Assembly: GCA_025603075.1 (NCBI GenBank)
Contig: MU626419.1
Coordinates: 1-44,734 of the forward strand
DNA: 44,734 nucleotides
Direction of reading: 5' to 3'
Origin: Neoconidiobolus thromboides FSU 785
Lineage: Eukaryota > Fungi > Entomophthoromycota
Below the pieces are notes generated by a model. It was given only the letters and a program-made list of their open reading frames with translations, ran no database searches and had not been told where the DNA came from. Each line of letters opens with the position of its first letter. Position 1 is the stretch's first letter. Of the stretch, positions 2,272-38,537 are shown piece by piece. The translations under genes were made by a program, and so were the position numbers.

Positions 2272-3330
2272 TTATTGATAATTAATAAACCAAGAGATAG
2301 CAGGTTCAATATGATCCTGTTTAATTGTACTTTTTTTAGCACCAAGGAAACCAGCAATAAAATTCATTTGAAATTTTTCAGCATGATAATTCCAAACAAA
2401 TGGAGTTTTTGTAAAACCAGCTGGTATTTGATTATAGGTAGTACCTGAAAACATATTACCTTCCTCTTTCCAATTCATAAAATCATTTTTGATATATTCA
2501 TTATCGGATTGTAAATAAGGATAGAATACATTAATCCAACCTGAAATAAATGGACCCCCTGAACCACCTTCCGGTTTATATAATTTAGTCCAAAAATCAT
2601 TATCAATAGTATCTTGTTTAGCTTGAATAAATTGATTCAATACTGGTATTAATTCCTTTTTCCAAAATTTCAAATCCTCAAACTTACTTAATAAAGTTTG
2701 ACTTCGTTGTAATAAATCTTTCCAATCTTCAATGGTACCTAATAAACTAATTTCTGGTATACCACATCTTGTGGTTACTGAATAAGTAAAATAGTTCTTA
2801 TATAAATCCATAATAGTTAAAGAAGTAACTGCAATAGCTAATTCATCTGAGGTCGAAAATGGTTTGTTAAGTAAACTACTTAAATCATTACTAACTTTTG
2901 TATTAATAATATCTACAAATTCAGGAAATAATTGTTGCCAATTGTTATTTCCACCTAAAATAAAATTATCTCTTCTAATGTCAATATTTTCCTGACCTGA
3001 ATGTTGAATACCTAATGTTTGTTTATATTTTTCACCATTTAAATTTACATGAATAGCTAATGCTTGTAAAATAACAATCCATAAATGATGAGGTGCTAAA
3101 GTTAAACCATGATGTTGGTCGTAAGCTAAGTGAATGGTTTCAGCAAATCCATTTAAACTTAAATAAGGATGTTTGTTATGTTGTATAATATTTGATTGAT
3201 CGAAAGCTTCAAATTTATTCTTTTTAAAAGAATCATTTTGTTGAATTCTTTCTTTAATTGATATCAAATCATATTTCTTAGTGGACTCTAATGAAACTTC
3301 ATTACTTGTTTTAATTACTTTAATATCCAT
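2272..3330 (-). CDS. DUF4419-family protein, 352 aa, intronless
   Basis: Recognised motifs HHGLTLAPHHLWIVILQ..HVNLN, TRCGIPEISLLGTIEDW, GGSGGPFISGWINVFYPY. Confidence 0.85.
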   Translation of the reverse strand: MDIKVIKTSNEVSLESTKKYDLISIKERIQQNDSFKKNKFEAFDQSNIIQHNKHPYLSLNGFAETIHLAYDQHHGLTLAPHHLWIVILQALAIHVNLNGEKYKQTLGIQHSGQENIDIRRDNFILGGNNNWQQLFPEFVDIINTKVSNDLSSLLNKPFSTSDELAIAVTSLTIMDLYKNYFTYSVTTRCGIPEISLLGTIEDWKDLLQRSQTLLSKFEDLKFWKKELIPVLNQFIQAKQDTIDNDFWTKLYKPEGGSGGPFISGWINVFYPYLQSDNEYIKNDFMNWKEEGNMFSGTTYNQIPAGFTKTPFVWNYHAEKFQMNFIAGFLGAKKSTIKQDHIEPAISWFINYQ

Positions 3331-3915
3331 TTGTCTTTTTATTTTAAAAAAAAGATAAATTTAATTGAAATAAAGTTTACTATCTTTAAAAATTCTTTAT
3401 AAAATTTAAAAAAGTGATGTCATTATAGCTTTCGTAAGCATTTTTAATAGCAATGACTTTATTGGCCAATTAATTTCTATCAAATTTAGTATCAATGTTT
3501 GCATAAAAGACACTAAATCATATTTATTTAAATAAAATAAAATAAAATAAAAATAAAATACTTAAACATTATAAAATATAATTAATAAATATAATTAAAG
3601 ACGTCTAATATGATCCATTTTAGAAATTAATATTAGTTATTTAAATAAGGTATGTAAAATTATTAAATAATATTTTTTAAATTTTAGATTTTCAAATATT
3701 TTATTTTTTGTGGTAAATCAATTAGTTTCACATCTTTTAAGAATAAAAACTAGAACAAATCAATTTTATTTTAAATTTAGTTTAACCCGATATCACTTCT
3801 TTTAATGAAATTTAATTAAAAAATCAAAAAGAATTTAGGAGTTTTAATCCGATATGTTGAAGATATAAATGAAGAATGTAAACGAATAAACAACAAAAAC
3901 TAAAACCAATATACT

Positions 3916-5592
3916 ATGATTGTAACTATAACTTTATTTTTACTTTTATCTCTCTTGTTCCTTTGGGCTTATAAAGTAACATTATAATATATATTATTTA
4001 AAAATTTAATCCATTTAGGTTTATTATTATCTTAATATCAGTCCATTGAAAGATATACCTGGGCCATTATTGTTATTACTCTTTCCACAACTGGACGACG
4101 TGTTAACTTTAGATTTCAAGGCTTATCAACGTTATGATAAATACCACAAGAAATATGGTCCAATAGTAAGAGTTGGTAAGGAATTTCATAGCTAATCAAA
4201 TCAATAAATTAAATGAAACATAGGATGGACTAAAGTAATTATATCAACTGAAGAAGGTGTTGAAAAAATATATTTAGATCCTAATTGTATTAAAGGCAGC
4301 TTTTATAAAAAAGTGCAAAAATTGTTAAAAAATTTATTTTCTATGACGGATAAACAAGAGCATAAAAAAAGAAAAAAGATATTGATGCCTTCATTTTCCC
4401 TCACTTTTATTAAAACAGTTGAATATAAAGTGATTGATGGTGGCATTAATCCATTGATTAAAACAATCCATGAGAAACTTGAAACAGATTCTACAATCGA
4501 TTTATTAGGATTATTTAAATTAACTACTTTAGATATTATCGGTGTTGTTAGTTTTGGAAAAAGTTTTAATGCCCTTAAAACTGGTAAAGCAGAGATTCAA
4601 GATTGGTTAAACAAAGGCTTTATTTATTTTTTCATTGCTGAAGCAATTCTGTTTCTTAAATTATTTCCCAATATTTATTATAGGAAAGTAATGACTTTTG
4701 CTTTAAATTGTGTTAAAGAAGCTAAGGAAATTAAGAAAGAAGATACTGTTTTAAACTCTTTAATTGAAGCGATAAACTCAGAAACTAATGAAAAATTAAG
4801 TGATTACGAACTTGCTAGTGAAGCATTATCTCAAATGTAATACAAATTAATCAGATTCTAAAGCTTATTAATCTAATTTCAATAGTGTTGCTGGTTCAGA
4901 TTCCACTGCTAATGCCTTGACTTGGTAATATTAAATTATAAAACAAACAAAATGAAACTTGCTAACTTTTATTAAAGGTTCTTCTATCTCTTATTGAAGA
5001 ATCCAGCTAAGTTGGAAGTTTTATCAAATGAAATTAATCAAAAAGTGAATGAGGAAAAGGATATAAGTAAAATTAATCGAAGTGAAATGAAATATCTTAA
5101 AGCATGTATTAAAGAAAGTATGCGCTTAATTTCAGGGGTTCCAGATGTTTTATGGAGACTTATACCTAAGAATGGTAAAGTAATTGAAGGTTATTATTTA
5201 CCTGAAGGAACTGAAGTAGGATCCAATGCACACACTTTACATACTAGTGAATCATTATGGGGTCAAGATGCAAATGAATTTAAACCAGAAAGATGGATCA
5301 AACATAATCAATTGATAGCAAACAACAGTAAATTTATACCATTTTCAGTGGGCAACCGAGCATGTATTGGAAGAAAGTGAGTATTTATTGAACTATTATT
5401 TTAATTGCTTTCATTAATTGGTCGGTTTTTAGTCTCGCCCAAACTATGATGGAACTTATAATTATTCATTTACTCACTAATTTCGAACTTGAATTGCTAT
5501 CTAAAGATTATACTTTGACTCCTCAAACACTCTCTTTTACTGCACCTAAAGAGGGTTGCTTCAATGTTAAATTTAAAGTAAAAGTAGTATAA
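3916..5592 (+). CDS. Cytochrome P450, 6 exons by manual splicing
   Basis: N-terminal membrane anchor MIVTITLFLLLSLLFLWAY, IPGP hinge, KYGPIVRVG, I-helix AGSDSTA, ExxR (ESMR), PERW, heme motif FSVGNRACIG. Short GT-AG introns join ORFs 4313..4840 and 4994..5380; stop TAA at 5590-5592. Confidence 0.93.
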
Positions 5593-24261: not shown

Positions 24262-25056
24262 ATGGATAACCCAAACAACAATCCCAACTCATATCAACCC
24301 GATTCAAACCCACGAAAATCTGGAATACACGCCATCCTCAATACTGAAGATATGCTTTACAATCAATCCTATGATGTATCATCAAAACCCTTGAACTCAG
24401 TTCCAAATCAATATGAAGTAGACCCTAATTTACAGTCCATCCCAAATAAAAATATGCCTATAGAGCCAAATGAAGTTGCCAGAAGAGTAGCTCATCTTTC
24501 TATCAATTCCCCAAGAAACCGCCATCCACCAGCTATTTCTCCTTATCAATCTGGGTCTAGTCGCTGCGACTCACCAAACTCTAATCAAAGTGGAATGATA
24601 CGTTCTCATGGCAGTCTAACACCATACTATACTAGATCAACTGGTACAAACTCAAGGGATGAAATCAACTCGTCATCAGGCAAACCAAATGAGACAGCCA
24701 TTGAAAAGAGACAAAGACGCCTTATAAGAAATAGAATAGCAGCACAAGATTCACGCTTAAAGAAAAAGATGTATGTATCTGAGTTGGAAGAGAAAGTGAA
24801 ACGGTTAGAAAATGAGAACTTTAAGTTACATCATGATATTGTTATGTTGAATGATAAGCTACAGAATGGGGTTGTAATTAATGAGATCGATCAGGAAACT
24901 ATTACTGCAAACCATCATCAGCCTTTATTACCGCCCGATGTTAGGAAATTTTCTATACCAGAACATTTATTGCCTCCTCGTCCTCTATCTACTCCACCTG
25001 TTTCAACTAAGGAGGGGAAATATAAGGGAAACCGTGAGGATGATGAACAAAATTAA
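24262..25056 (+). CDS. bZIP transcription factor, 264 aa, intronless
   Basis: Basic region KRQRRLIRNRIAAQDSRLKKK followed by a heptad zipper (LEEKVKRLENENFKL); low-complexity N/P/S-rich N-terminus. Confidence 0.9.
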   Translation: MDNPNNNPNSYQPDSNPRKSGIHAILNTEDMLYNQSYDVSSKPLNSVPNQYEVDPNLQSIPNKNMPIEPNEVARRVAHLSINSPRNRHPPAISPYQSGSSRCDSPNSNQSGMIRSHGSLTPYYTRSTGTNSRDEINSSSGKPNETAIEKRQRRLIRNRIAAQDSRLKKKMYVSELEEKVKRLENENFKLHHDIVMLNDKLQNGVVINEIDQETITANHHQPLLPPDVRKFSIPEHLLPPRPLSTPPVSTKEGKYKGNREDDEQN

Positions 25057-25440
25057 TATCTTTTATAAGTCATATCTGTTGTACTCTTAAGTTAATTATC
25101 AATGATTTTGTTCAGATTCTAGTTTAATAATACGAAATTAATATTGTAAGTATTTTGTATTCTATCATTATTACTTTGATTATAGATGTGAAATTGTTTT
25201 ATCCTGTTTCACAAAGCAACCTTATAGCTTTAATAAATATATATTCGTTTTTAGTGTTTAATTTTTTTATGTGTTCAAATTTAAATCATTACACTTTTAA
25301 TTTAGTTCCTTTAATTTATAAATTAGTTTAAGCTGTTTTGCTTATCAAAGGATAAATATGAAAAGGAGCATGTAAACCTGGTGAACTCAAAAATCAAACT
25401 AACAAAAACAAGAAAACAAATTAGATTAATTCTCGTTTAT

Positions 25441-26559
25441 TATCATTTATTACTTCTTTTTTTATACACCTTGATAAAAGATGTAGTATATAGGGGTGTT
25501 TTTTTTGGCTTTGTTACTTTTTCCACTTTTTAAGCACTATTTAAGTGGAAAGGTTGTTAGTAAAATTCTTAAACAAAAGAATATATCTCCATATGTTATA
25601 GAATCATTATAATTAGATTCTGATAATTCTGATCAAATACTGCCAACAGCTTCAAACAATGCTCTTTCGTTTTGCGGATCTTTCTCTTTGATTGACCGCT
25701 TCCGCTTGGTATAAATAGACTCAGCAGGGTTTAGAAACAGAGAATTTGTGTTCACTTACTTCAATGAGCTTTCTGACATTTGGATCTTTATTAGCATATT
25801 TTCTACGATTATTATTACATCCGATGTATTCATTTGAGCAAACTTGTCTATAATTGATTCAATAAATTGAAAAAAAGATTCTATCAAAAAAGTTTAGTTG
25901 AGTCTGATGTTTGATTATCCCATTTTTATTCATAACATCACAGTAATATATCTTTTGTTTTGAATCCAGGACCGAGGGAAGTAAGCTTTCCAACTTTAAT
26001 TTTCTCCTTTTATACTTGGTGCGCATTGTAATGGAAAATGTTGCTTTATTTATAAAAAATATCCTAAAGTCATCAAAAATTAATTTTTTATTTAGAAAAA
26101 TGCTAGTATAGTGAGATCTCATTTCTAGCATATCTAAACCATTATCCTGAGGGACTGAATTTTCATCTTGAATGGCTAAATAAATACACTTCAAAAAGCA
26201 ATCAAATGCCTTTGTACATCTTGATGTAGTTGATCGGCCTACATTTACCCTCATTTCCTTTAACGGATTCTATTTTATTGCTGGCGTCATACTTTTGCAA
26301 TCTTCATCAACCCAACTTCGTATAGGTTTCTCTTGACTATCTGATAGGGCTCTCGAATTAAGTCTTGGTACTGCTCTCGATTTTCTACTCTGACCTTTCC
26401 TCTCAGTATAATTTCTTATAATGTCATAAACAGTAGTTTTTTTTGTAGCCTGTTATTCTAAGAATATCTTTTATATTATTTTCCTTAATATAAACTTAAT
26501 AATCATTTTTCTCACTTCATTATTCATACTAAACTTTTCTTTCGGGTAATCGATGTCAT
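25441..26559 (-). pseudogene. IS630/Tc1-like transposase-derived paralogue D, pseudogene, interrupted by MITE copy 8
   Basis: Broken frames give TTVYDIIRNY, RSWVDEDC, FFINKATFSITMRTKYK, HQTQLNFFD, FLNPAESIYTK, KEKDPQNERALFEAV and, after the MITE, ILHLLSRCIKKEVIND; several stops and frameshifts. Confidence 0.85.
25491..25591 (-). mobile_element. MITE copy 8, inserted in the coding region of pseudogene D
   Basis: TA(25489-90)-TAGGGGTG...ATATCTCCA-TA(25592-93); both flanks align to the H-M-L codons of paralogues A-C. Confidence 0.9.
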
Positions 26560-27073
26560 TTGAACTTAAAAAAAAGCATATAGCGGTTGGACTTTTTAGA
26601 TTGTTTTTAATAGAAAGTACCCAATTCATTAACTATTGAAAACTAGAAATCTATCCTAAAATTAATTTGATGATTTCATTTGAAGGCTAAGAACTTGATT
26701 TCTCGGATAATTGGCTGTGAAAAAAGTAAAATCAAATAGTGTTATATTTTCTGTTGGAAATATTGTATTGAGTTTCAAGTGATATTTTCTACCAAGACTT
26801 CAGCTACTAATTTAAAAATCAAAATTTGATAAATTGAGCTCCACAAAAAATGGGCAGTATATTGGAGCAGAAAATATCACTACCGCTATTGGTTTGACTT
26901 TTACTTTATATATATCTATGTCCTATATTGCGCTACTTTGTAGATATAATTATATTACTAGCAAATTGCTGCAAAGTATTTTATTTATTGGAAAAAAGGT
27001 ATATTAAGAACATATTAAATTTACAACTAGAAGTTATAAAAAAAACCAAAAAATGAAAGTACAAATGTAATAT

Positions 27074-28099
27074 TTATTCATTAAGGATCTCTTCTTTTCT
27101 GATACATTTTGGTAGTAAACTAAGCATGTGTTCAAAATAACCTTTACAATCAACCTCTGAAATTTCTAGTAAAACTTGTTCTAAAACTTCAAATAATTCT
27201 TCCTCACTTTGTGGATCTTTTCCTCTGACTAACTGCTTCCACTTGGTATACATGGCCTCAACAGGATTTAAAAACTCAGAATAGGATGGTAAAGAAACTA
27301 AATTATACCCTTTTGATTCAATAAATTTCTTCATTGCTGGATCTTTGTCAATATGAGCACTGTCCATAATAATTGTCGCTTCTGATATGCCTTTTTTCTT
27401 TAATTCTTTGATAATTGATTTAATAAATTGATCAAATGACTCAATATCAAAAAGTTTTAATCGAGCCTCAAATTGAACTATTCCGCATTTACTCATAGCA
27501 CAACACATTGATATATTCTTTGTACGAAGTGCAGGAATAAACTTGTTTGACTTTGGTTTTTTAATTATGGCTTTTCTATTCCGACGCATTGAAACACTGA
27601 ATGTTGCTTCATTTATAAAAATAACTTTAGAGTCATCGAGTTTTTCTATGTTATCCACAAAATTATTGGCATAGATAGCTCTGTTTTCCAGAGTAGACGA
27701 ATCGTTATTTTGAGGAGCTAAATTAATACGTTTAAAAGAAAAATGAAAGGCCTTCAGATGTTCATTTATTAAAGATTCGCTTACATTTAATCCCATTTCA
27801 TCCTTCATTTTCTCTTTTATAGCTTTTATTGGGGTGTTGCAGTTTTCATCAATCCAAGAATGCATTATTTCTCTCTGGGATTCCGATATGGTCTTATCTT
27901 GAGGTACTGCTTTTTTTTCTTGAACTTTTAATTTCAATTTTTCAGGGCAATCTTCGCTATTTAGATATTTGTTTATAATTGCTTGAACTGTGGTACGTTT
28001 AAGGCCTGTTTGTTTGGCAATGTTTGTAGCGTTGGTTCCATCAGTATAAGAGTTGATGACACTTTTTCGGTCTTCGTCGTTAATTTTTTGGTATTTCAT
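27074..28099 (-). CDS. IS630/Tc1-like transposase-derived protein A, 341 aa, N-D34E triad
   Basis: Two HTH regions (IAKQTGLKRTTVQAII; IKAIKEKM..VSESLINEHL..FSFKRI), VIFINEATF (normally IDE), IIMDS, LPSYSEFLNPVE with 34 residues between D and E. Intronless; no flanking TIR seen by eye. Confidence 0.88.
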   Translation of the reverse strand: MKYQKINDEDRKSVINSYTDGTNATNIAKQTGLKRTTVQAIINKYLNSEDCPEKLKLKVQEKKAVPQDKTISESQREIMHSWIDENCNTPIKAIKEKMKDEMGLNVSESLINEHLKAFHFSFKRINLAPQNNDSSTLENRAIYANNFVDNIEKLDDSKVIFINEATFSVSMRRNRKAIIKKPKSNKFIPALRTKNISMCCAMSKCGIVQFEARLKLFDIESFDQFIKSIIKELKKKGISEATIIMDSAHIDKDPAMKKFIESKGYNLVSLPSYSEFLNPVEAMYTKWKQLVRGKDPQSEEELFEVLEQVLLEISEVDCKGYFEHMLSLLPKCIRKEEILNE

Positions 28100-28299
28100 T
28101 TTGAGAAGTAAATGACGAATGAAACAAAAGTTTAAAAAAAATCACTTATTGCACTTTATTTTGACATGGTTTTCTGACCAAAATAGTTTTGGTTGGCTGG
28201 TTTTAAAGGGTTAAAAAGTTTATGCTATTTTCTCCTAAAATATTTGAAGATAATCTCCTCTCTATTATTAGCTCTCGTATTTGACTTTAAACTAGAAAC

Positions 28300-29251
28300 A
28301 TGTCATCAACGGACAGAGCGGCCAGTTTAGTATCCGAATGCTTACTTAAAGGCATGATAATGACCACACAAATATGCCCAGATTGTCCAGTAAATTTATT
28401 ATATTATTAAAACCATTTTACTAACTGGTATTGAAGTGCCCTTTGATGAGAGACAGAAAAACAAAGGTGTTGCACTGTCCAGTATGTGAAGAGGAAAAAA
28501 AATTAGGCACGAAAGAAGAGGAAAACTTACAAATTGAAGATATAGTAACAGAAAAAGGGGAAACTTTATCTCCTGAGACGGTTAATAGAGAAGATGATTT
28601 AGAAGCTAATGGAAATAATAAGAAAAGAAGAGACGAAATAAGTGAAACAATTGGAGCAAAACTACTTCAGGGATGGGCACTTTTAGATACTTTATGTCCT
28701 AATAGCAAATGCCAAGGGGTAAGTTTACAATAGTTATTTTTAAATTAGTATTAATTGAAATAGATTCCATTAGTCAGAAATAAAGAAAAGCATAGTTTAT
28801 GTGTAAGCTGTGGAACGCAATACATTTTGGAAAAGGATTACGACGAAAAAATACATGGAGCAAAAAGGAACCTATCTGAAGCTACAGCTAAACCAAAAGA
28901 CGCTGGTGACTTGAGGAAGATGGAGTATAAAAAAAAGGTATTTATTTCCGTATCAATAAAAGCGTTTTTTGATATTTTATATAGTTGAGCTTACCAAATA
29001 CTACATCAAAGTCAATAGAAGTAAAGTCATCTAAAGATAGTTTTAGTAGTCCACAGTATTCTAACTTAAAAGGATCATTTTCGCATAACATTTCTTCGAC
29101 AGAAAAGATAGCTATAGAAAAAATTAATTCACTTAATGACAGATTATCCCAAAGTAATAATATAATTGAGATAGAAAATTTAGCCAAAGCTTTATTAGCT
29201 TTACAAAAATTAGTGGAAAATACAATGACATTAAATAGCGATACAAGATAA
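28300..29251 (+). CDS. SSSCA1: SSSCA1/ZNRD2-like zinc-ribbon protein (Auto_anti-p27 domains), 4 exons
   Basis: SLVSECLLKGMIMTTQICPDC..PLMRDRK..HCPVC and second repeat ISETIGAKLLQGWALLDTLCP..C..VPLVRNK..LCVSC; C-terminal helix EIENLAKAL. Confidence 0.85.
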
Positions 29252-29366
29252 ACAGATTTTGAGTTTTGTTATTATACTTTAATAAATGAAATAAAATTCA
29301 TGACTTTTGGACTCAAGTTTAACACTTTACAGTTCTTTTGTTTAATTAAGTTATTGACTCTATAAT

Positions 29367-29760
29367 TTAATGGACTTTAGTTGGCTTATTTGAGACCTTA
29401 TTATTTTCTGAAGGCAAATTAATATCTTATCTCACAGTTAAATCCAAAATAGCTTTAGCCTGTTGATGGTCATGGATCACAAGCTCCATAACTTCTTGAA
29501 AGCTACCATTATCAGATTGCATCTAGTCTAAACATAAATTTTATCAAATACTAAAGTACAATAGATTACTTATTTAAAATAATACGCTCTTGCACTGAGT
29601 AGTGAGATAGCTATGTCATTTTTAGATACAAGGGCAATGGACCTTCAATTTAGTTTAATAATGCTAAAGGTAGAACAGAGGCTATCAACTAATTATAAAT
29701 TCATTGCTAAAATGACAAGGCGTAGTGTGTAACATTTGCTAAAACCATTGGCTATGCTTT
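29367..29760 (-). pseudogene. Decayed duplicate of the 3' part of RRP41 (unit 1)
   Basis: Translates SFQEVMELVIHDHQQAKAILDLTVR*..SNKPTKVH* vs intact [34 protein letters not shown]; homology continues through the intron into the upstream exon. Confidence 0.85.
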
Positions 29761-30020
29761 TTAGTTCCTGTATTAACTATGGTTTTTTTATGTTTTAAGT
29801 TATGAAATACAAAAATGATGCTGTATATCATTTTATATTTACTTTTTATTTCTTAAATTTATGCAATAATGCTTTTAAACATAGCTATCCTATTTACGCA
29901 AGGCTGATTAAAGCTTATTATTAACAAAAAATAAGTGTAGCCTAAAGACACATTGTAAAACAAAGGTATCAAAACAGAAAATAATAATCATGATAACAAC
30001 ACAAAAGTATTAATCAAATG

Positions 30021-31103
30021 TTATTCATCAATTATCTCCATTCTTTGTAAACATTTTGGTATAAAGCTTAACATATGCTCATAAAACGACTTGCAGTCGG
30101 CATTTGTTATTTCTGACCAAACATTGTTAACAGTCTCAAACAATTCTCTCTCATTTTGCGGATCTTTTTCTCTGATTAACTGCTTCCACTTGGTATAGAT
30201 GGACTCAGTAGGATTTAGAAACAGTGAGTTTGGCGGTAAACAGATCAACCTGTGGCCGCTTGCTCCGATTAGTCTTCTAATACTTGGATTGTTATCAACA
30301 AATACGCTATCCATAATTATTGTCGCTTCTGTTATATTGATTTGAGTAAACTTAAGGATGACTACTTGAATAAATTGATGAAATGATTCCTCATCAAAAG
30401 AATGTAACTGAGTCTGATGCTCAACTATTGCATGTTTATTCATAGCGCAACATAACAAAATGTTTTTTGTATTGAATCCAGGGCCAGTAACAGGAAACTT
30501 TTTATTTATAATATCTTCTTTTTTATATTTTGTACGTGTTGTAATACAAAAAGTTGCTTCATTTATAAAAAACACTTTAGAATCATCAAGTCTTGCTATT
30601 TCACTAACAAAAATACCAACATAAAAAGCCCTCATTTCTAGCGTAGAGAAATCACTTTTTTGGGCAACCAGATCATTACTTTCATCAGTACTTTTTTTTT
30701 TGTGGTGATTTGACCCACTATTTTGATCAGCAGAACTTATACGCTTAAAAGAGTAGTTAAAATCTTTCATACGTCTATGTATACCTGTTATGCCTAAGTC
30801 TATATTCTTTTCATCCTTCAGTTTTTTTGTCATTGTATTTAATGATATGGTGCAGTCTTCATCAACCCAAGCTTGTATAATTTCACTTTTAGAATCGACA
30901 ATTCGTTTTCTAGGACCTAGCTCTGCTTTTTTCTGTTTTTGTTGTCGTCTATAATCCCCTCCATCAAGATATTTTTTTATAATATTGTGAACAGTCCTAC
31001 GCTTAAAACCCATCACTTTGGCAATTAGCCTTGGGCAAGATCCATTAATATAGGAATCGACGATCCTTTCTCTGTCTTCATTGCTAATAAGATTATATCT
31101 CAT
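30021..31103 (-). CDS. IS630/Tc1-like transposase-derived protein B, ~360 aa, N-D34E triad
   Basis: Likely start MRYNLISNEDRERI (31103; the ORF track extends it to 31175); VFFINEATF, IIMDS, LPPNSLFLNPTE (D-34-E); 21-aa in-frame insertion relative to A and C. Confidence 0.88.
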   Translation of the reverse strand: MRYNLISNEDRERIVDSYINGSCPRLIAKVMGFKRRTVHNIIKKYLDGGDYRRQQKQKKAELGPRKRIVDSKSEIIQAWVDEDCTISLNTMTKKLKDEKNIDLGITGIHRRMKDFNYSFKRISSADQNSGSNHHKKKSTDESNDLVAQKSDFSTLEMRAFYVGIFVSEIARLDDSKVFFINEATFCITTRTKYKKEDIINKKFPVTGPGFNTKNILLCCAMNKHAIVEHQTQLHSFDEESFHQFIQVVILKFTQINITEATIIMDSVFVDNNPSIRRLIGASGHRLICLPPNSLFLNPTESIYTKWKQLIREKDPQNERELFETVNNVWSEITNADCKSFYEHMLSFIPKCLQRMEIIDE

Positions 31104-31311
31104 TTTATATATTGAACTATTGTTTAAATTATTAATGATGTCAAAAAATAATTGCCTATCATTTTTCAAATACATAGAGAACTAAGGTCAAATTGTTTTT
31201 GGTTGGCTAGTTTTGAATTTTGAAAAATGCTATATGACTTTGCCCTTTTATGCTAACTTTGCCTTAAGATTAATATTTTCAATTTTTCTAAACAAAACTA
31301 TACTTAAAAGT

Positions 31312-32300
31312 AGCTCAATAACAGATAGAATAAAAAGTTTTTATCTGAATGTTTAATCAAAGACAAAACAATGACCCAATGAATATTTCAAAGTCATTTG
31401 GTTAGCATAACAAACAAATCAAATCAGGCTACTATGTGACATTAAAGTGTCCTTTGATATGAGGTAGAAAAACAAAAATATTGCGCTTTGCATTGTCTGA
31501 CAGAGATAAAAAAGAATAGACATAAAAGGAGAAAATTATGGAAGCTGAAGATAAAGCCAGAAAGAGAAAGAATTGTTACACTTACTAGTTAAAGAGATGG
31601 TAAGTTAAAGGAAAGTTGACCTAACAGGAAATGAAATGGCATGAATGAAATATGTCGAACCAAATTACTTTAAACACAAGCGGTGTTGCACACTTTATAC
31701 TCTAATAACAAATATCAAGAGGTAATAATGTACATTAATTTGAAAATGATAATTAACTAAATATATCCTCCACTAGCTAGAAATAAAGAGAAGCATAGAT
31801 TATATATGAGCTATGAAACAAACTACGTTTCAAAAAAGACTCATAATGCAACAGTCCATACGCATGAATAAACCTACCTGAAATTCCAGATAAAACACAA
31901 AATAAAAGCGACTAAAAAGAGTTGGTATATAAAAGGGAGGTGTTATGGAGATATCGACTAAATATTTTTATATACAAGGGTGTTTTTTTTGTTTCATTTA
32001 TTTCTCCATTTTTTAAGCACTATTTAAGCGGAAAAATTGTTAGTAGAATTCTTAAACACAAATACATCCCCATATCTTGTGTAGTAAAATTTCTAATGCT
32101 ATACTAAAGCCAATAGAAAAAGGCCCACCTAAGAATGTTACTTAAAAGGGTCCTTTCCAAATACCATTTCCTTGACAGGAAAACCACAAACGAAGAAAAA
32201 TATAATTGTTAAGCAATAACTCTTTATTATATAGCAATGTATCTGAGATAGAGCATTTAAAGTAAACTCTATTAGATAACAAAGAAAACGATATAAAATA
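31312..32300 (+). pseudogene. Decayed duplicate of SSSCA1 (unit 2), with MITE copy 9 inside
   Basis: attaaagtgtcctttgatatgaggtagaaaaacaaaaatattgcgc (31441) vs intact attgaagtgccctttgatgagagacagaaaaacaaaggtgttgcac (28430); 5' and 3' parts also align; no open frame. Confidence 0.8.
31975..32072 (-). mobile_element. MITE copy 9
   Basis: TA-CAAGGGTG..TTTTAAGCACTATTTAAGCGGAAAAATTGTTAGTAGAATTCTTAAACACAAATACATCCCCA-TA. Confidence 0.88.
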
Positions 32301-32427
32301 CAGCGGTATTAAATAATTATTTAGATTAAACAGACTTTTAAAATTATATCATTATTCTTTAATAAAATACCGAGGCTTAAAATTGTATTTATATCTGTTA
32401 TCTTTAGTTTATCTATTTAACTATGCC

Positions 32428-32850
32428 ATTAGCTCTGAGGCTTAACGAATTTATTTGGACTTTTTCTACTCCTTAACTTTTACTGCAATCAACTTAATAT
32501 CAAATTTCACACTGAGACACAATATACTTTTAACTAGTGTTGGTATTAACGGATTTCAAGCTTTATGACCTCCTAAAAGCTATCATTATCTATCTCAATT
32601 ATGACCAAAAGATAATATAGGGATGTATTTTTTGTGTTTAAAAATTTTATCAAAAAATTTTTCACTCAAATAGCGCTTAAAAGATGGAAAAGGTGATGAA
32701 GCCAAAAAAACGTCCACATATAGTGCTAAGCATTACTCTGTCTTTATTTTTGAAATTATGAGTTTTAAATGGGAATATGTGATAGCTATTGTTGCTGCTG
32801 TAAATTGTAGAGGCCTCTTTGGTTTACTTGAGCCGTGCTAAACAGCTAGA
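32428..32850 (-). pseudogene. Decayed duplicate of the 3' part of RRP41 (unit 2), split by MITE copy 10
   Basis: caagctttatgacctcctaaaagctatcattatc (32557) vs intact caagctccattacttcttgaaagttatcattacg (35829); tgatagctattgttgct (32779) vs gagacagctaccgttacc (35956). Confidence 0.7.
32618..32718 (+). mobile_element. MITE copy 10
   Basis: TA-TAGGGATGTATTTTTTGTGTTTAAAAATTTT..CTCAAATAGCGCTTAAAAGATGGAAAAGG..AAAAAAACGTCCACA-TA. Confidence 0.88.
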
Positions 32851-33110
32851 AAAAGTAAGCTGTCAACAACTTGCGGTGGTTCAGTTTAAATAGATAAGTT
32901 ATTGAATTGTGCTATAACTACAAAGAATTGTGCTAACATTATATTTACTATCCATATACATTCGATTTTATATTAAAATCATCCTTTTAAAATCACCTGT
33001 TTTTGTAGAATTATCATCAAAAGACAAATACAACATAATAGATCGAAATCTGAAAAATGGAACTTTCAAATAACTAAAAATTAAATGACAATGAAACCAT
33101 AAATACATAT

Positions 33111-34133
33111 TTATTCATAAAGTACTTCTTCTTTTCCTATACATTTAGGCAAAAAATCGAGCATACGCTCATAGAAATCTTTACAATCAGTGTGAGTTAT
33201 TTCTGATAAAGCACTGTTGAAAACATTATATAATTCATCTTCATTTTGTGGACCATTTGCCCTGACTAATTGTTTCCATTTAGCATACATATATTCAATA
33301 GGATTTAGAAACAAAGAATAAGGTGGTAAGCAAATTAAGGTGTGATCGCTTGCTTCAATGGATTCTTTGATCTTTAGATCTTTTTCAATGTACTCATGAT
33401 CCATAATTATCACTGCTTCTTTAATATTCTTTTGAGTAAGTTTAAAAAGAATTGATTTAATAAATTGATAAAATGATTCAGTACTGAAGCGCTTTGGTTG
33501 AGTTTGCCATTCAATAATTTCGGTTTTATTCATACCACAACATATCGATACGTTTTTTTTACGGAGCATATTGTTAAATGGATCAACTTTTATTTTTTTC
33601 TTAGTTATTCTATTAATTGTACGCATTGTAATGTTGAATGTTGCATCATTTATAAAAATAACTCTAGAGTCATTAAGCTTCAATATGTCATTTATGAAGT
33701 TATTGGCATAAAAAGCTCTAAATTCTAAAGTAAGGGTGTCATTGTTTTGAGATGCTAAATTGATACGTTTGAAAGAATAATTAAAGTCATTTAAGCTTCT
33801 GCTTATAATGTCTGCGCTTACTTTGATCTCTATTTCATTCATCAATTTCTTTTTTATTGCATTTATTGACATAGTGGAATCTTCATCAACCCAGGACTGA
33901 ATCATTTTCCTTTGGGATTCTGGCATAATTTTCTTCTTCATTTCTCCTCCTTCTCCCCTGCTTGCTTTTATAGTATAATCCTCTCCATCAATATATTTCT
34001 TTATAATAGTATAAACAGTCCTAGGCCTAAAGCCCATTATTTTAGCAATTTCTTGTTGACGCGATCCATTGATATAGGAGTCAACAATCCTTTCCCTGTC
34101 TTCATTACTTATACGTTTCGGCTTCGATTTCAT
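33111..34133 (-). CDS. IS630/Tc1-like transposase-derived protein C, ~340 aa, N-D34E triad
   Basis: Likely start MKSKPKRISNEDRERI (34133; the ORF track extends it to 34181); VIFINDATF, IIMDH, LPPYSLFLNPIE (D-34-E); HTH IAKIMGFRPRTVYTII. Confidence 0.88.
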   Translation of the reverse strand: MKSKPKRISNEDRERIVDSYINGSRQQEIAKIMGFRPRTVYTIIKKYIDGEDYTIKASRGEGGEMKKKIMPESQRKMIQSWVDEDSTMSINAIKKKLMNEIEIKVSADIISRSLNDFNYSFKRINLASQNNDTLTLEFRAFYANNFINDILKLNDSRVIFINDATFNITMRTINRITKKKIKVDPFNNMLRKKNVSICCGMNKTEIIEWQTQPKRFSTESFYQFIKSILFKLTQKNIKEAVIIMDHEYIEKDLKIKESIEASDHTLICLPPYSLFLNPIEYMYAKWKQLVRANGPQNEDELYNVFNSALSEITHTDCKDFYERMLDFLPKCIGKEEVLYE

Positions 34134-34577
34134 TTTAAATTGAATATTATTTAAGTTTAAATAAAGATAATGAGGAATCATCTTTACAGTATTTCCAATT
34201 CAATTTTGGAAGGCTTCTAAAAGCTCCTTGCCAATTAAACTTTTCAAATTAACTAACTTTCTACAAATCAAAATGTATATTTTATGAGTTTTGTTACTGT
34301 AAACAGATGCATTTTAATCTGCTTAAAATTATCAAATTTACATTAATTGTACTACTATAGTTTTTAATAACCTGGCAGAAATATCAAACAAATCGGCAAT
34401 TTGGGATTAAACGCGTAGCACTTTTACTAATAACATGGAAAATAGTATCAAAATCGGTTTTTAATTGGCTAGTCTTCAAGTATTAAAGAATGGTTTAAAT
34501 TTTTGCCTATAGAGATTACCATGAACATGAACTTTCACAACCTTCAGCTTTCTCGTATTCAAACTTGAGATTGAAAC

Positions 34578-35560
34578 TATATCATCTACAGACACAGTAA
34601 TCAATCCAGTATTAAAATTACTACTTAGAGGTATGTTAATAGTCTTATAGACATGTCCAAATTGTTTAATAAGTCAATTACAATATTGAAATCAGCTTTT
34701 TAACAGGAGTTAAGATGTGCTTTGAAGCAAGATAGAAGAACAAAAATAATAAACTGCATAGTACATAAAAAGACGAAAGCTTGCGAGTTGAAGATAAATT
34801 GCCAGAAAAAACATGTTTGTCTGACTTAGTAGTTAAATAGGTGGTAAGTTAGAAGCTAATAAAATATTAAAAAAGGAAGAGATGGAATAATTATACTTGA
34901 AGCCAACCTACTTCAAGAATGAACACTATTTGGCGCCTGATGCTCTAATAGTGAGTATCGAAGGGCAAATAACAGCGTATTGTAAAATATGAGGATATAT
35001 TTTTTTGTTGAAAAATTTTACTAATAGCCTTTCCACTCAAATAGTGCTTGAGAAATGGAAGTGATGAAACCAAAAAAAAATCCCATGTGCTAGGGTTGAT
35101 TAAAACATATTCCCCCTTTTAGAAATAAGGAGAATTATACTTAATGTATAAGCTGTAAAACAATAATTTTTAGAGAAGGATTGTGATGGGAAAATGCATC
35201 GATCAAAAAAAACTTAGCTGAAAACACAATTAAATTAAAAAATGTTGGCGATGTGAAAGAGGTGGAACATAAAAAAGGCCCTTTTTAAAATAGTTTGAGT
35301 TATTCTATAATACTTTCTACAGCAAAATGTAAATAATGCTATACCAAAGCCAACATAAAAAAATCATATAAAACACTTAATAGCTCATAACGTTTTGACT
35401 CAAAAGGCTCATTTTCTGGTAGCATTTCTTTGAAAGAAAAAACAATTGTAAGAGAAATAATTTACTGAGCGAAAGATTATCATTTTGTAGTATACATTTG
35501 AAATAGAGAGCTTAGCTAAAGCTTCATTAGCTTTATAAAAATCAATAGAAAACATATACA
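34578..35560 (+). pseudogene. Decayed duplicate of SSSCA1 (unit 3), with MITE copy 11 inside
   Basis: ctacttagaggtatgttaatagtcttatagacatgtccaaattg vs intact ttacttaaaggcatgataatgaccacacaaatatgcccagattg; gaaatagagagcttagctaaagcttcattagctttataaaaatc (35500) vs gagatagaaaatttagccaaagctttattagctttacaaaaatt (29168). Confidence 0.8.
34990..35085 (+). mobile_element. MITE copy 11
   Basis: TA-TGAGGATATATTTTTTTG..TTTCCACTCAAATAGTGCTTGAGAAATGGAAGTGATGAAACCAAAAAAAAATCCCA. Confidence 0.85.
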
Positions 35561-35712
35561 TTAAGTAATCATGCTTAATAAAAAGCTTGGGAATATTATT
35601 TCAAAAATTCAATTATTCTTTTTTAATAAAGCGAACTAAAAAAATTACATAGTATCTGAAACTTGCTATTGTAATACTTATTCTATTTAATCAACACTTT
35701 TAGCTCTATAAC

Positions 35713-36825
35713 TTAGTAAGTTTTGGTTGGCTTATTTGAATTCTTCTTATTGTTTTCTGCAAGTAAAGTAGTATTTGATCTCACGGTTGAATCCAAAATC
35801 TCTTTAACTTGTTGACAACCATGAATCGCAAGCTCCATTACTTCTTGAAAGTTATCATTACGCAGTTTAGATTCAATCTATATAAAAATTCAATATTAAC
35901 ACTAGAATTTAGCCCATTCTTTACCTGTAACAATATAACTTTTCCACTCAATGGTGAGACAGCTACCGTTACCTCTGGCGACTGGGAGGATCTCTCTTCA
36001 ATTTGATTAATATCTAAAATGGGTTAATTATTTTTCAATATTAGCTTATTTAATACATACCAAGCACTGCAGTATTTTCTATAAAACCTGCAGAAGTAGC
36101 GCATACATAATCACTCATTGGTACACCAGCATGGATTAAAGCAAGTGTTGCTGCATTAATAGAGGCTTGGAGGATACCTGTTTTTATAAATATTTGAATA
36201 TAAAAAAATGAATTCATTTAAATTTACCGCCATCATCCTGTAAAATCTGTAAAAAAATGTCAATCTGTGAACGGGATGATAATTGGGTAAGGATGATGGG
36301 CTCAAACGTTTGTTTAACTGATTGGGCCATCTCCATAATGCGCCTAAAAGAATTAATTTCATGTTTCAAATACAATAAAAGATGTTAAATACTTGTCATT
36401 TTTACTACGCTTTTTACGTTCACTGGTACTGAATGGAGAAACATTAATTTCTACATTAATAAATGCTCTATCATGTAAAATGGCTGATCTTTTTCTTGGC
36501 TATTTAGAATTTATTTGGATTTAATCTAATTCTAATTGATTAAACATGTCCAATTTTACCTCTCTAGGTCCATAAACTGTTGCTAACACTTTAGTGTTTC
36601 CCAATTCTAAATAACTTGATCCATCAGCATCTCCTAATACTCCTACTTTAGACACTAGTTTTCTTAGCTCATTTGGTCGCCTGCCATCAACTCTTAAACC
36701 TAAATTTTAGTTGGTATTATACTTGAGACATTAATTATAGTACCTTCAATACTCAATAGTTCAACTCTGGACTAAAATCGAGGTTAGTTTTATGTAATCT
36801 TATATTTAAATTTTAAATCAACCAT
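35713..36825 (-). CDS. RRP41: Exosome core subunit Rrp41/Ski6 (RNase PH fold), multi-exon
   Basis: M|[10 protein letters not shown]|[92 protein letters not shown]; stop at 35713-35715. Confidence 0.95.
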
Positions 36826-37307
36826 TTTCAAATCAAGTAAAAACTAAAAAGTTGAAAAATTAGATTGAGCTTTGATTATTTTTAGATGAAATTTAAGAAT
36901 TTATAGCATCAATAGTAAAATATGAAGAAGCATAAAGAAATATGGATTGTACATGAAATTCAAGTAACTTTCATACTTTGTTGCTTTCATAAATATTATA
37001 ACTATCTACTATCTATTTTACGAAATATAAAGGCGTAATTTTAATTTGCTACATACAAAAACATTGGTTCATGTACTTTGTTTAATAATGAATAATAATT
37101 TATATTCAAAATGTTGAATATTTTGATTTAATATTAGACATTGAGTCATGAATTAAATATTACTTATTATGAATATTATCATTAAACAAGAAAACATGAT
37201 TATATATCGTGCATAAACTTGATTATGAAATTATTTTTGATTTAGTTTTAATTTAGATTAATAGTATCAAAGCTAATGAAATACAAATAATTTAGAATAT
37301 TTATATA

Positions 37308-37405
37308 TGGGGATGTATTTTTTGTCCAAGAATTTTTCTAATGAATTTTCCACTCAAATAGCGCTTGAAAAATGGGCAAAGTAGGAAAACCAGAAGAAAT
37401 ACTTA
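37308..37405 (+). mobile_element. MITE copy 12
   Basis: TA-TGGGGATGTATTTTTTGTCCAAGAATTTT..TTTTCCACTCAAATAGCGCTTGAAAAATGGG; right end decayed. Confidence 0.85.
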
Positions 37406-37463
37406 TATATTTATAAACTTGTTAAATTGGTATTTGTTTTTTATTTTCTTAAAAATTATTTTA

Positions 37464-37563
37464 TGGAAGTGTTTTTCTTGACTTCATTACTTTTTCCATT
37501 TTTAAGTGCTATTTAAGTGGAAAATTTGTTAGTAAAATTCTTGATCACAAAAATACATCCTCT
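37464..37563 (-). mobile_element. MITE copy 13
   Basis: TA-TGGAAGTG..CATTACTTTTTCCATTTTTAAGTGCTATTTAAGTGGAAAATTTGTTAGTAAAATTCTTG..AAAAATACATCCTCT-TA. Confidence 0.88.
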
Positions 37564-37758
37564 TATAGTTATTATTTTGAAATATTCAATAAAAGTTTCA
37601 GTTTACTTATAAACCTTTCAAAGAATTTTATGACGTTGGTTTTTTAGTGAAATAAAATTTTAATAGCTAAACCTAAGGATATTGTTGAACTCTATAATAC
37701 TTTATTTTTCATCAGTTAAGTTGATCATATCTTATATTATACTTATTTGAAATATATA

Positions 37759-37859
37759 TGGGGATGTATTTTTGTGTTTAAGAATTTTACTAACAAATTT
37801 TCCGCTTGAATAGCGCTTAAAAGGTGGAAAAAGTAATGAAATCAAAAAAATCATCCCCA
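37759..37859 (+). mobile_element. MITE copy 14 (close to consensus)
   Basis: TA-TGGGGATGTATTTTTGTGTTTAAGAATTTTACTAACAAATTTTCCGCTTGAATAGCGCTTAAAAGGTGGAAAAAGTAATGAAATCAAAAAAATCATCCCCA-TA. Confidence 0.93.
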
Positions 37860-38537
37860 TATGTTAAATATTAAAAAAATTATTTTTTATCACATTTTTT
37901 AAGTAATATTATAAAGGATACAAATTATACTTTCTGTTATAAAGAAGTAGGTTTATCTCTTAGATGCCTATCATTGGTCTAACTCCTGCTTTTCGCTCTT
38001 TATTTCCCTTCAGCCCACACTTACCTACGCATTTATATTTATTTCCTAGCCTTCATAAAGAAAAAACCTGCAAAATTTGCTCCTTCGAAGCTTGAAAGAT
38101 TAATAAAAACCACTCCAACAGAGCTTAGTAGCAACTGCCATTCAAACATCAATAAATGACAACACTTTTTTAATTGGTATTTAATCAAAAAAAATTAATT
38201 TTATATTATATGAATGGACAAAATAACAATAATAAACATACACAGGCTATATTTGTCAAACTATCAAACAGTATAATGGAGTATATTAGCCTAAAACAAT
38301 AAAGTTTTAGCTCAACAAATATTATTATAATGCATGTGGTTAAATTTAAGTTAATACAACTTGCTTAATAATATGAATCTACCTTCTTGTTCTGGAATAG
38401 TTAAAGTTCAATGTTTGAATTTGGATTATAAATCAGCTTTCTAATTGGCTACTAATTTGTAATTTTCGATAAGATTACATCACATTAATCTTATAAAAAA
38501 TAAATTAAATAGAAACTCAAAATTTTTAACAATAACC

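Follow-up and report, generated by a model that had tools for sequence, protein, structure and literature searches.

A probable domesticated family of catalytically dead Tc1-like transposases, spread by segmental duplication in the fungus Neoconidiobolus thromboides

When a transposase is said to have been domesticated, the usual evidence is that it is conserved across species. In primates, SETMAR (Metnase) is a single-copy gene in which the domesticated transposase domain of an Hsmar1 mariner element is fused to a SET domain and the third residue of the catalytic triad is changed (DDN). The fission yeast CENP-B homologues Abp1, Cbh1 and Cbh2 are pogo-derived, carry a DDD triad, are encoded by three dispersed genes, have centromere and retrotransposon roles, and are conserved between species. 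The inactive PiggyMac-like paralogues of Paramecium and FHY3/FAR1 of plants belong to the piggyBac and Mutator-like superfamilies, and their functions are established. In yeasts, STORM is described as a tandem array of totivirus-like origin that has been domesticated and whose conservation between species goes back at least 15 My (PMC13756089). Here we analyse a 44,734-nt stretch of the genome of Neoconidiobolus thromboides FSU 785 (GenBank assembly GCA_025603075.1, contig MU626419.1; the window), in which three Tc1-like genes lie in tandem units together with copies of two host genes, SSSCA1 and RRP41. Judged from sequence, these genes and their relatives elsewhere in the genome are probably a lineage-specific, catalytically dead, domesticated transposase family that spread by segmental duplication. 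Domesticated transposases are a well-known kind; notable here are the internal control that the locus provides and the expansion by segmental duplication. The host is an entomophthoralean, an early-diverging insect-pathogenic fungus, and no such family had been described there.

The window is the entire contig C162 of a 24.6-Mb assembly (799 contigs, ~27% GC) in whose genes introns are short, about 45-55 bp. The initial annotation had proposed three head-to-tail units, each comprising a Tc1-like gene (minus strand), SSSCA1 (plus strand) and the 3' part of RRP41 (minus strand), with 2947 and 3090 bp between the successive Tc1-like stop codons. Sensitive blastn self-comparison and a three-way MAFFT alignment bear this out: unit 1 lies at 26894-29837, unit 2 at 29838-32929, and unit 3 at 32930-36013, bounded on the right by the duplication breakpoint, which falls where the penultimate exon of RRP41 starts. 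The self-matches pair 26894-31174 with 29838-34202 (60% identity over 4.5 kb), 28179-29660 with 34449-36012 (61%), and 31149-32588 with 34408-35860 (57%). In the three-way alignment (input 26894-29837, 29838-32929 and 32930-36250), the units are colinear end to end, through the ORF (open reading frame), the intergenic DNA, the four SSSCA1 exons with their three introns, and two RRP41 exons with their intron; identity across the aligned parts is 0.45-0.75, and whole units are 60-65% identical.

All three Tc1-like ORFs are on the minus strand and open, as had been noted: A (27074-28099, 341 amino acids), B (30021-31175, 384 amino acids) and C (33111-34181, 356 amino acids). Aligned with B and C, A shows no stop codon, and every indel in the coding sequences is a multiple of three, for example a 63-nt insertion in B. 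A dead fourth Tc1-like copy, D (25591-26527, minus strand), sits 1.5 kb to the left of A, separated from it by passenger-free DNA; it has frameshifts and at least 5 stops, its longest remaining open run is 131 codons, and a miniature inverted-repeat transposable element (MITE) at 25487-25637 lies at its 3' end. A 61% similarity between 25054-25599 and 37007-37572 was considered as an older, larger duplication and rejected, as it consists of a shared MITE plus AT-rich noise.

The passenger genes have fared otherwise than the ORFs. Intact SSSCA1 (autoantigen p27; 28300-29251, plus strand, 4 exons, 270 amino acids, with an Auto_anti-p27 match) is found in unit 1 only. Intact RRP41, an RNase PH exosome subunit, belongs to unit 3 only (35713-36825, minus strand, 8 exons, 254 amino acids); its exons match RNase_PH in colinear order, its best PDB matches are Rrp41 structures, and the duplicated unit takes in just its last two exons. 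Run exon by exon, like those of Pfam and PDB, searches of the 24.6-Mb genome found only one intact copy of each gene, and gene models and genome-wide searches agree with the annotation on where the live copies are. The four spare copies are the last two RRP41 exons of unit 1 (29358-29660, minus strand), SSSCA1 of unit 2 (31313-32325, plus strand; 12 stops and 9 frameshifting indels; a MITE at 31971-32078 in former intron 3), the RRP41 3' part of unit 2 (32440-32820, minus strand; a MITE at 32585-32722 in the former last intron) and SSSCA1 of unit 3 (34579-35580, plus strand; 10 stops and 9 frameshifting indels; a MITE at 34983-35084 in former intron 2). Projected codon by codon, they hold 35 in-frame stops in 657 codons, along with 32 indels of which 26 shift the frame. 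The description of the redundant passengers as intron-bearing, riddled with stops and indels and in three cases invaded by MITEs was thus accurate. Former introns remain alignable between units (intron 1 is 47 nt, ungapped, with identity 0.49-0.62), and since homology extends through them, the copies were made from DNA and not from mRNA. The 100-nt MITE in three of the four dead passengers is absent from the other units. All three of these MITEs are located in former introns and none in former exons, which, with n = 3, may be chance.

How improbable is it that ORFs of the same age stayed open by accident? In random DNA of this composition a stop falls at 7.8% of codons, and 341 open codons have P = 1e-12. 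Under a neutral F81 model of substitutions alone, set at the divergence of the dead passengers (pairwise identity 0.60-0.65), a given ORF stays open with a probability of 1e-7 to 1e-6, and A, B and C all do so with a probability of 1e-19 to 1e-21; at 95% pairwise identity the per-ORF value would still be just 0.13. With the empirical indel spectrum added in Monte Carlo runs, not one of the 12000 descendants simulated still had 300 or more codons open; the longest open stretch had a median of 63 codons and a maximum of 222. Neutral survival of the three ORFs, or a mis-assembled triplication, can thus be set aside almost completely: nothing speaks for it beyond the AT-rich, repeat-rich context, while these probabilities stand against chance, and units that are 60-65% identical and carry MITEs of their own cannot be produced by assembler error, which excludes an assembly artefact.

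The ratio of nonsynonymous to synonymous divergence (dN/dS, or omega) was estimated by NG86 and LWL85 with bootstraps. NG86 values are 0.39 for A-B (bootstrap 95% interval 0.26-0.53), 0.28 for A-C (0.15-0.39) and 0.28 for B-C (0.19-0.40), and in none of about 900 bootstrap replicates of these pairs did dN/dS reach 1. The control pair, the two dead SSSCA1 copies, gives 0.86 (0.57-1.23), and live-versus-dead pairs give about 0.5. The most constrained regions of the ORFs are the first helix-turn-helix (HTH) and the C-terminal third of the catalytic domain; dN is about 0.4. Moderate purifying selection on each Tc1-like ORF, with omega about 0.3, is supported by these results. The inference of purifying selection from the passengers as a built-in neutral control therefore stands, both in the simulations, where 1 kb ORFs do not commonly survive, and in the comparison of pseudogene divergence with ORF dN/dS.

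This argument needs the ORFs to be as old as the units, as the initial annotation held. At synonymous sites they differ from one another (dS 1.0-1.3, third-position identity 0.55) at least as much as passengers and introns do (intron and intergenic identity 0.45-0.66), so the ORFs are as old as the units and are not younger insertions. Equal age answers the common objection that transposase ORFs may be open simply because they are young. A, B and C might otherwise be younger transposon copies, open because recent, that landed independently at one and the same site in every unit or took over that site from older copies; Tc1-like elements do insert at TA, which is abundant in the AT-rich DNA here, and the best tree does not unite A, B and C in a clade. 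Apart from the divergence just given, homology runs unbroken across both ORF boundaries in the three-way alignment, there are no terminal inverted repeats (TIRs), a catalytic Asp was lost before the copies split, and an A+B+C clade is not rejected by the approximately unbiased (AU) test (p = 0.08). The data already contradict recent insertion, and we give it scarcely any credence.

ORF A and SSSCA1 are head-to-head with 200 bp between them (28100-28299). This intergenic region is carried by every duplicated unit, with a between-unit identity of just 0.48-0.58. It may be a shared bidirectional promoter, and the arrangement may explain why the SSSCA1 passenger moved along with the Tc1-like gene, even if the units have not conserved this stretch.

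The proteins encoded by A, B and C are recognizably transposase-derived. DDE_3 (PF13358) matches with E = 4e-14 (A), 1e-7 (B) and 2e-13 (C); the IS630-type model NF033545 matches with E = 1e-19 to 4e-26, under its curated cut-off; HTH_SB matches all three under its gathering score; and a profile of the family finds the PAI subdomain of Sleeping Beauty (6urs) with E = 1.2e-6. The AlphaFold2 model of ORF C (pLDDT, the predicted local distance difference test score, 83.7) has two three-helix HTH bundles and an RNase H-like domain, and Foldseek matches it best to Mos1, Metnase/SETMAR and Sleeping Beauty (E = 7e-11 to 5e-8).

The catalytic triad is complete in none of the ten intact copies found in the genome: it reads N-D-E in eight, including A, B and C, N-N-E in k1 and D-N-E in C1a (the copies are placed below). 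In canonical relatives, of which Hydra P0004 is one, the motifs are FIDE..., DNxxxH and LNPIE, giving D..D34E. The family has lost the His of the DNxxxH motif and kept the LNPxE motif; the second Asp, the Glu and the 34-residue spacing between them (a direct count in A and in the Hydra outgroup) are kept in most copies. From what is established for DDE enzymes we infer that the family proteins are unable to cut DNA, and most likely they work as non-cutting DNA-binding proteins.

That last conservation, of second Asp, Glu and spacing, could also be read as the mark of active N-D-E transposases with a non-canonical active site, which mobilise the MITE and whose ORFs are open because the elements function; the MITEs were active recently, yet the Tc1/IS630-type ORFs checked each lack one triad residue. 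We hold this to be very improbable. Replacing a triad carboxylate is known to abolish catalysis in DDE enzymes, the second Asp is also lost in two members, no TIRs are present, and the copies, 45-61% identical, sit in colinear units with dead host genes, unmoved since duplication. Moreover, in an assembly of 799 contigs an active element may be unassembled, or it may be of another superfamily.

A copy census by six-frame genome search and local mapping extends the family to 18 mapped copies, 10 intact and 8 dead. The intact ones are A, B and C, five on contig C225 (k1, k4, k7, k23 and k26), one at the start of C3 (C3a) and a solitary one on C1 (C1a); the dead ones are D, which belongs to the B/k4/k26 subfamily, and seven others. 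Protein identity among copies is 39-61%, and there are no near-identical dispersed copies. The idea that the transposase-derived ORFs survived is right for A, B and C, all of them open, and has to be tempered for the family at large, in which 8 of the 18 copies are dead.

Passengers, too, occur beyond the window. On C225, four more stretches, every one of them dead, align colinearly with the SSSCA1-RRP41 passenger segment (5-1012; 2779-4112; 29047-30189, reversed; 30610-30960, reversed), and in those that contain the RRP41 part, homology stops at the same breakpoint in the RRP41 penultimate exon as in the window units. What was called a triplication is indeed three tandem units here, within a larger amplification of at least 7 passenger-bearing units at two loci. 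Since C162 alone has the passengers in intact form and the 5' part of RRP41 that was not duplicated, it is marked as the place of origin. On C225, two inverted arrays enclose some 12 kb with ordinary genes, one of them for an SLC12 transporter, and k4/k26, k7/k23 and k1/C3a form mirror-image sister pairs; all six ORFs are still open after that duplication. The end of C225 (dead SSSCA1) and the start of C3 (C3a; C3:1-1141) probably abut. The same-strand order of subfamilies is C-like then B-like at C225 1223-5446, and B then C at window 30021-34181; this reversed order is not given by a plain block copy, and a circular intermediate or unequal exchange might account for it.

We found no TIRs common to the units, just unit-specific imperfect inverted repeats at chance level. 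Inverted repeats around the solitary C1a were considered as TIRs and judged unconvincing, being crossing and imperfect. A k-mer search and alignment found no upstream non-coding motif common to all ten intact genes. The annotation had the genes spreading by segmental duplication and not by transposition, and this is upheld by the colinear non-transposon DNA, by the single RRP41 breakpoint that C225 shares, and by the lack of shared TIRs.

A HMMER scan of 1.84 billion representatives gave 9278 relatives. Among the best 150 of these, 108 have D-D-E, and the FINEATF signature of the family occurs only in two gene models from N. thromboides itself. The public set annotates a truncated k23 model (KAI9292018.1) and a fragment of a dead C3 copy, both as hypothetical proteins; KAI9292018.1 and KAI9298884.1 match translations of parts of C225 and C3 with 100% identity. 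In trees, the ten intact copies are monophyletic (100/100), nested among canonical transposases and sister to Hydra sequences. C1a is basal and keeps the first Asp, and the nine Asn copies form a clade (96/94), so the Asp-to-Asn change happened once, before the amplification; that the loss predates the amplification supports segmental duplication as the mode of spread. Some animal relatives also have incomplete triads: P0002 (Anopheles gambiae LOC133391178), P0055 and P0039 read G-D-E, G-N-E and T-E-E, which may be independent events of decay or domestication.

Within the clade, B falls together with k4/k26 (91/64), and C3a/k1 are the partners of C (92/90). In the best tree, then, the three window ORFs are not one another's nearest relatives, with the proviso that the AU test disfavours their clade and does not reject it. 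The topology suggests that A, B and C split first of all and that the copying of units to the second locus came later.

The MITE itself, of ~105 nt (for example at window 37756-37866), has at least 2844 candidate copies in the genome, and as many of them are 94-100% identical, it moved recently. Tc1/IS630-type ORFs checked elsewhere each lack one triad residue (C31 H-D-E, C52 D-N-E, C271 D-G-E, C618 G-D-E), and a Tc1-type gene with all three triad residues seems to be missing from the genome. At the loci examined, MITE termini were not found flanking any family member or other Tc1-like ORFs. This raises the question of what mobilises thousands of near-identical MITEs where the Tc1-type genes all look catalytically dead.

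Such a genome invites an explanation in which the ORFs are kept for a transposon family and not for the host, the dead transposases binding the ends of the MITE, or of an autonomous partner, as repressors or helpers, and the arrays being part of a mobile-element ecosystem. The abundance and recent activity of the MITE, its entry into the array after duplication, the constraint on the first HTH region, which is among the most constrained parts, and a birth-and-death turnover with fast protein evolution that fits a conflict scenario are all in keeping with it. No sequence link, though, joins the MITE ends to the flanks of any family member, and immobile genes fixed at host loci are selectable through host fitness only; we consider selection on the transposon's behalf unlikely. 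A related proposal, which we put forward tentatively and regard as rather doubtful, is that the ten fast-evolving dead transposases are birth-and-death, sequence-specific binders of the MITE or of its missing autonomous partner. If this were true, they would be a transposon-control or MITE-wired regulatory system expanding by segmental duplication, like vertebrate KRAB zinc-finger clusters.

A domesticated family spread by segmental duplication would have arisen as follows. An ancestral locus held a Tc1-like gene (minus), SSSCA1 (plus) and RRP41 (minus), and a segment of ~3 kb would have been tandemly duplicated at the DNA level, with one breakpoint at the RRP41 penultimate exon and the other some 180 bp past the stop codon of the Tc1-like gene. 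As the cell needed no more than a single SSSCA1 and a single RRP41, the spares would decay neutrally and later gather MITEs, and the Tc1-like paralogues would each be held by moderate purifying selection. With the paired-type HTH and the RNase H-like fold kept and the triad incomplete, their products would be DNA-binding proteins that do not cut. The change of the first Asp to Asn in the nine array-borne copies would have arisen once, ahead of the amplification, and birth-and-death growth by segmental duplication (10 alive, 8 dead) would have carried passenger-bearing units to the second locus (C225/C3). We infer that the family benefits its host.

Several points weigh against this history. 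Eight copies died, and no individual copy is indispensable. No orthologue turned up in the protein collections searched, where the nearest relatives are canonical DDE transposases at no more than 36% identity and where ORFs A, B and C themselves do not occur. An omega of ~0.3 with dN of ~0.4 is weak constraint for a housekeeping role, and with dS near saturation the omega values are approximate. The absence of TIRs is weak evidence, as this much divergence and neutral decay would erase them.

What the locus offers is a control of the genome's own: host-gene copies of the same age, in the same segments, decayed, and the transposase-derived ORFs did not, so that the within-genome evidence for selection is unusually clean. 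A dead transposase family has, moreover, reached ten genes purely by segmental duplication. Elsewhere in the window, an intronless DUF4419 gene lies at 2272-3330 and has a 68%-identical paralogue elsewhere in the genome.

Set beside canonical DD34E Tc1-like transposases (Sleeping Beauty; Hydra vulgaris LOC105845029, which is P0004), the family shares DDE_3, a PAI-type HTH, the 34-residue spacing, LNPxE and the overall fold. It departs from them in that the triad is incomplete in 10 of 10 copies, the DNxxxH His is lost, TIRs and near-identical copies are lacking, and the genes lie in duplicated host DNA. As with SETMAR, an IS630/Tc1/mariner-type transposase appears to have been retained as a host gene in which one residue of the triad is replaced, and the structural match of the ORF C model to the Metnase/SETMAR transposase domain is significant by Foldseek. 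Unlike SETMAR, there are ten stand-alone paralogues, the first or second Asp is the one changed, amplification was in tandem, and the family is known from one fungal genome.

Like Abp1, Cbh1 and Cbh2, this is a small fungal family of transposase-derived paralogues from the same superfamily that bind DNA (here a prediction) and do not transpose. Those proteins are of the pogo clade, dispersed, of known roles and conserved across species, whereas the N. thromboides family is Tc1-like and known from a single genome. The PiggyMac-like paralogues and FHY3/FAR1 are likewise multi-member transposase-derived families in which catalytic residues were lost and selection retained, and the present family differs from both in lying in tandem units with hitch-hiking pseudogenes. 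With STORM, as described (PMC13756089), it has in common a fungal tandem array of ORFs derived from a selfish element and kept despite fast protein divergence; STORM is viral in origin and conserved across species, whereas the array described here comes from a transposase and its family is known from one genome.

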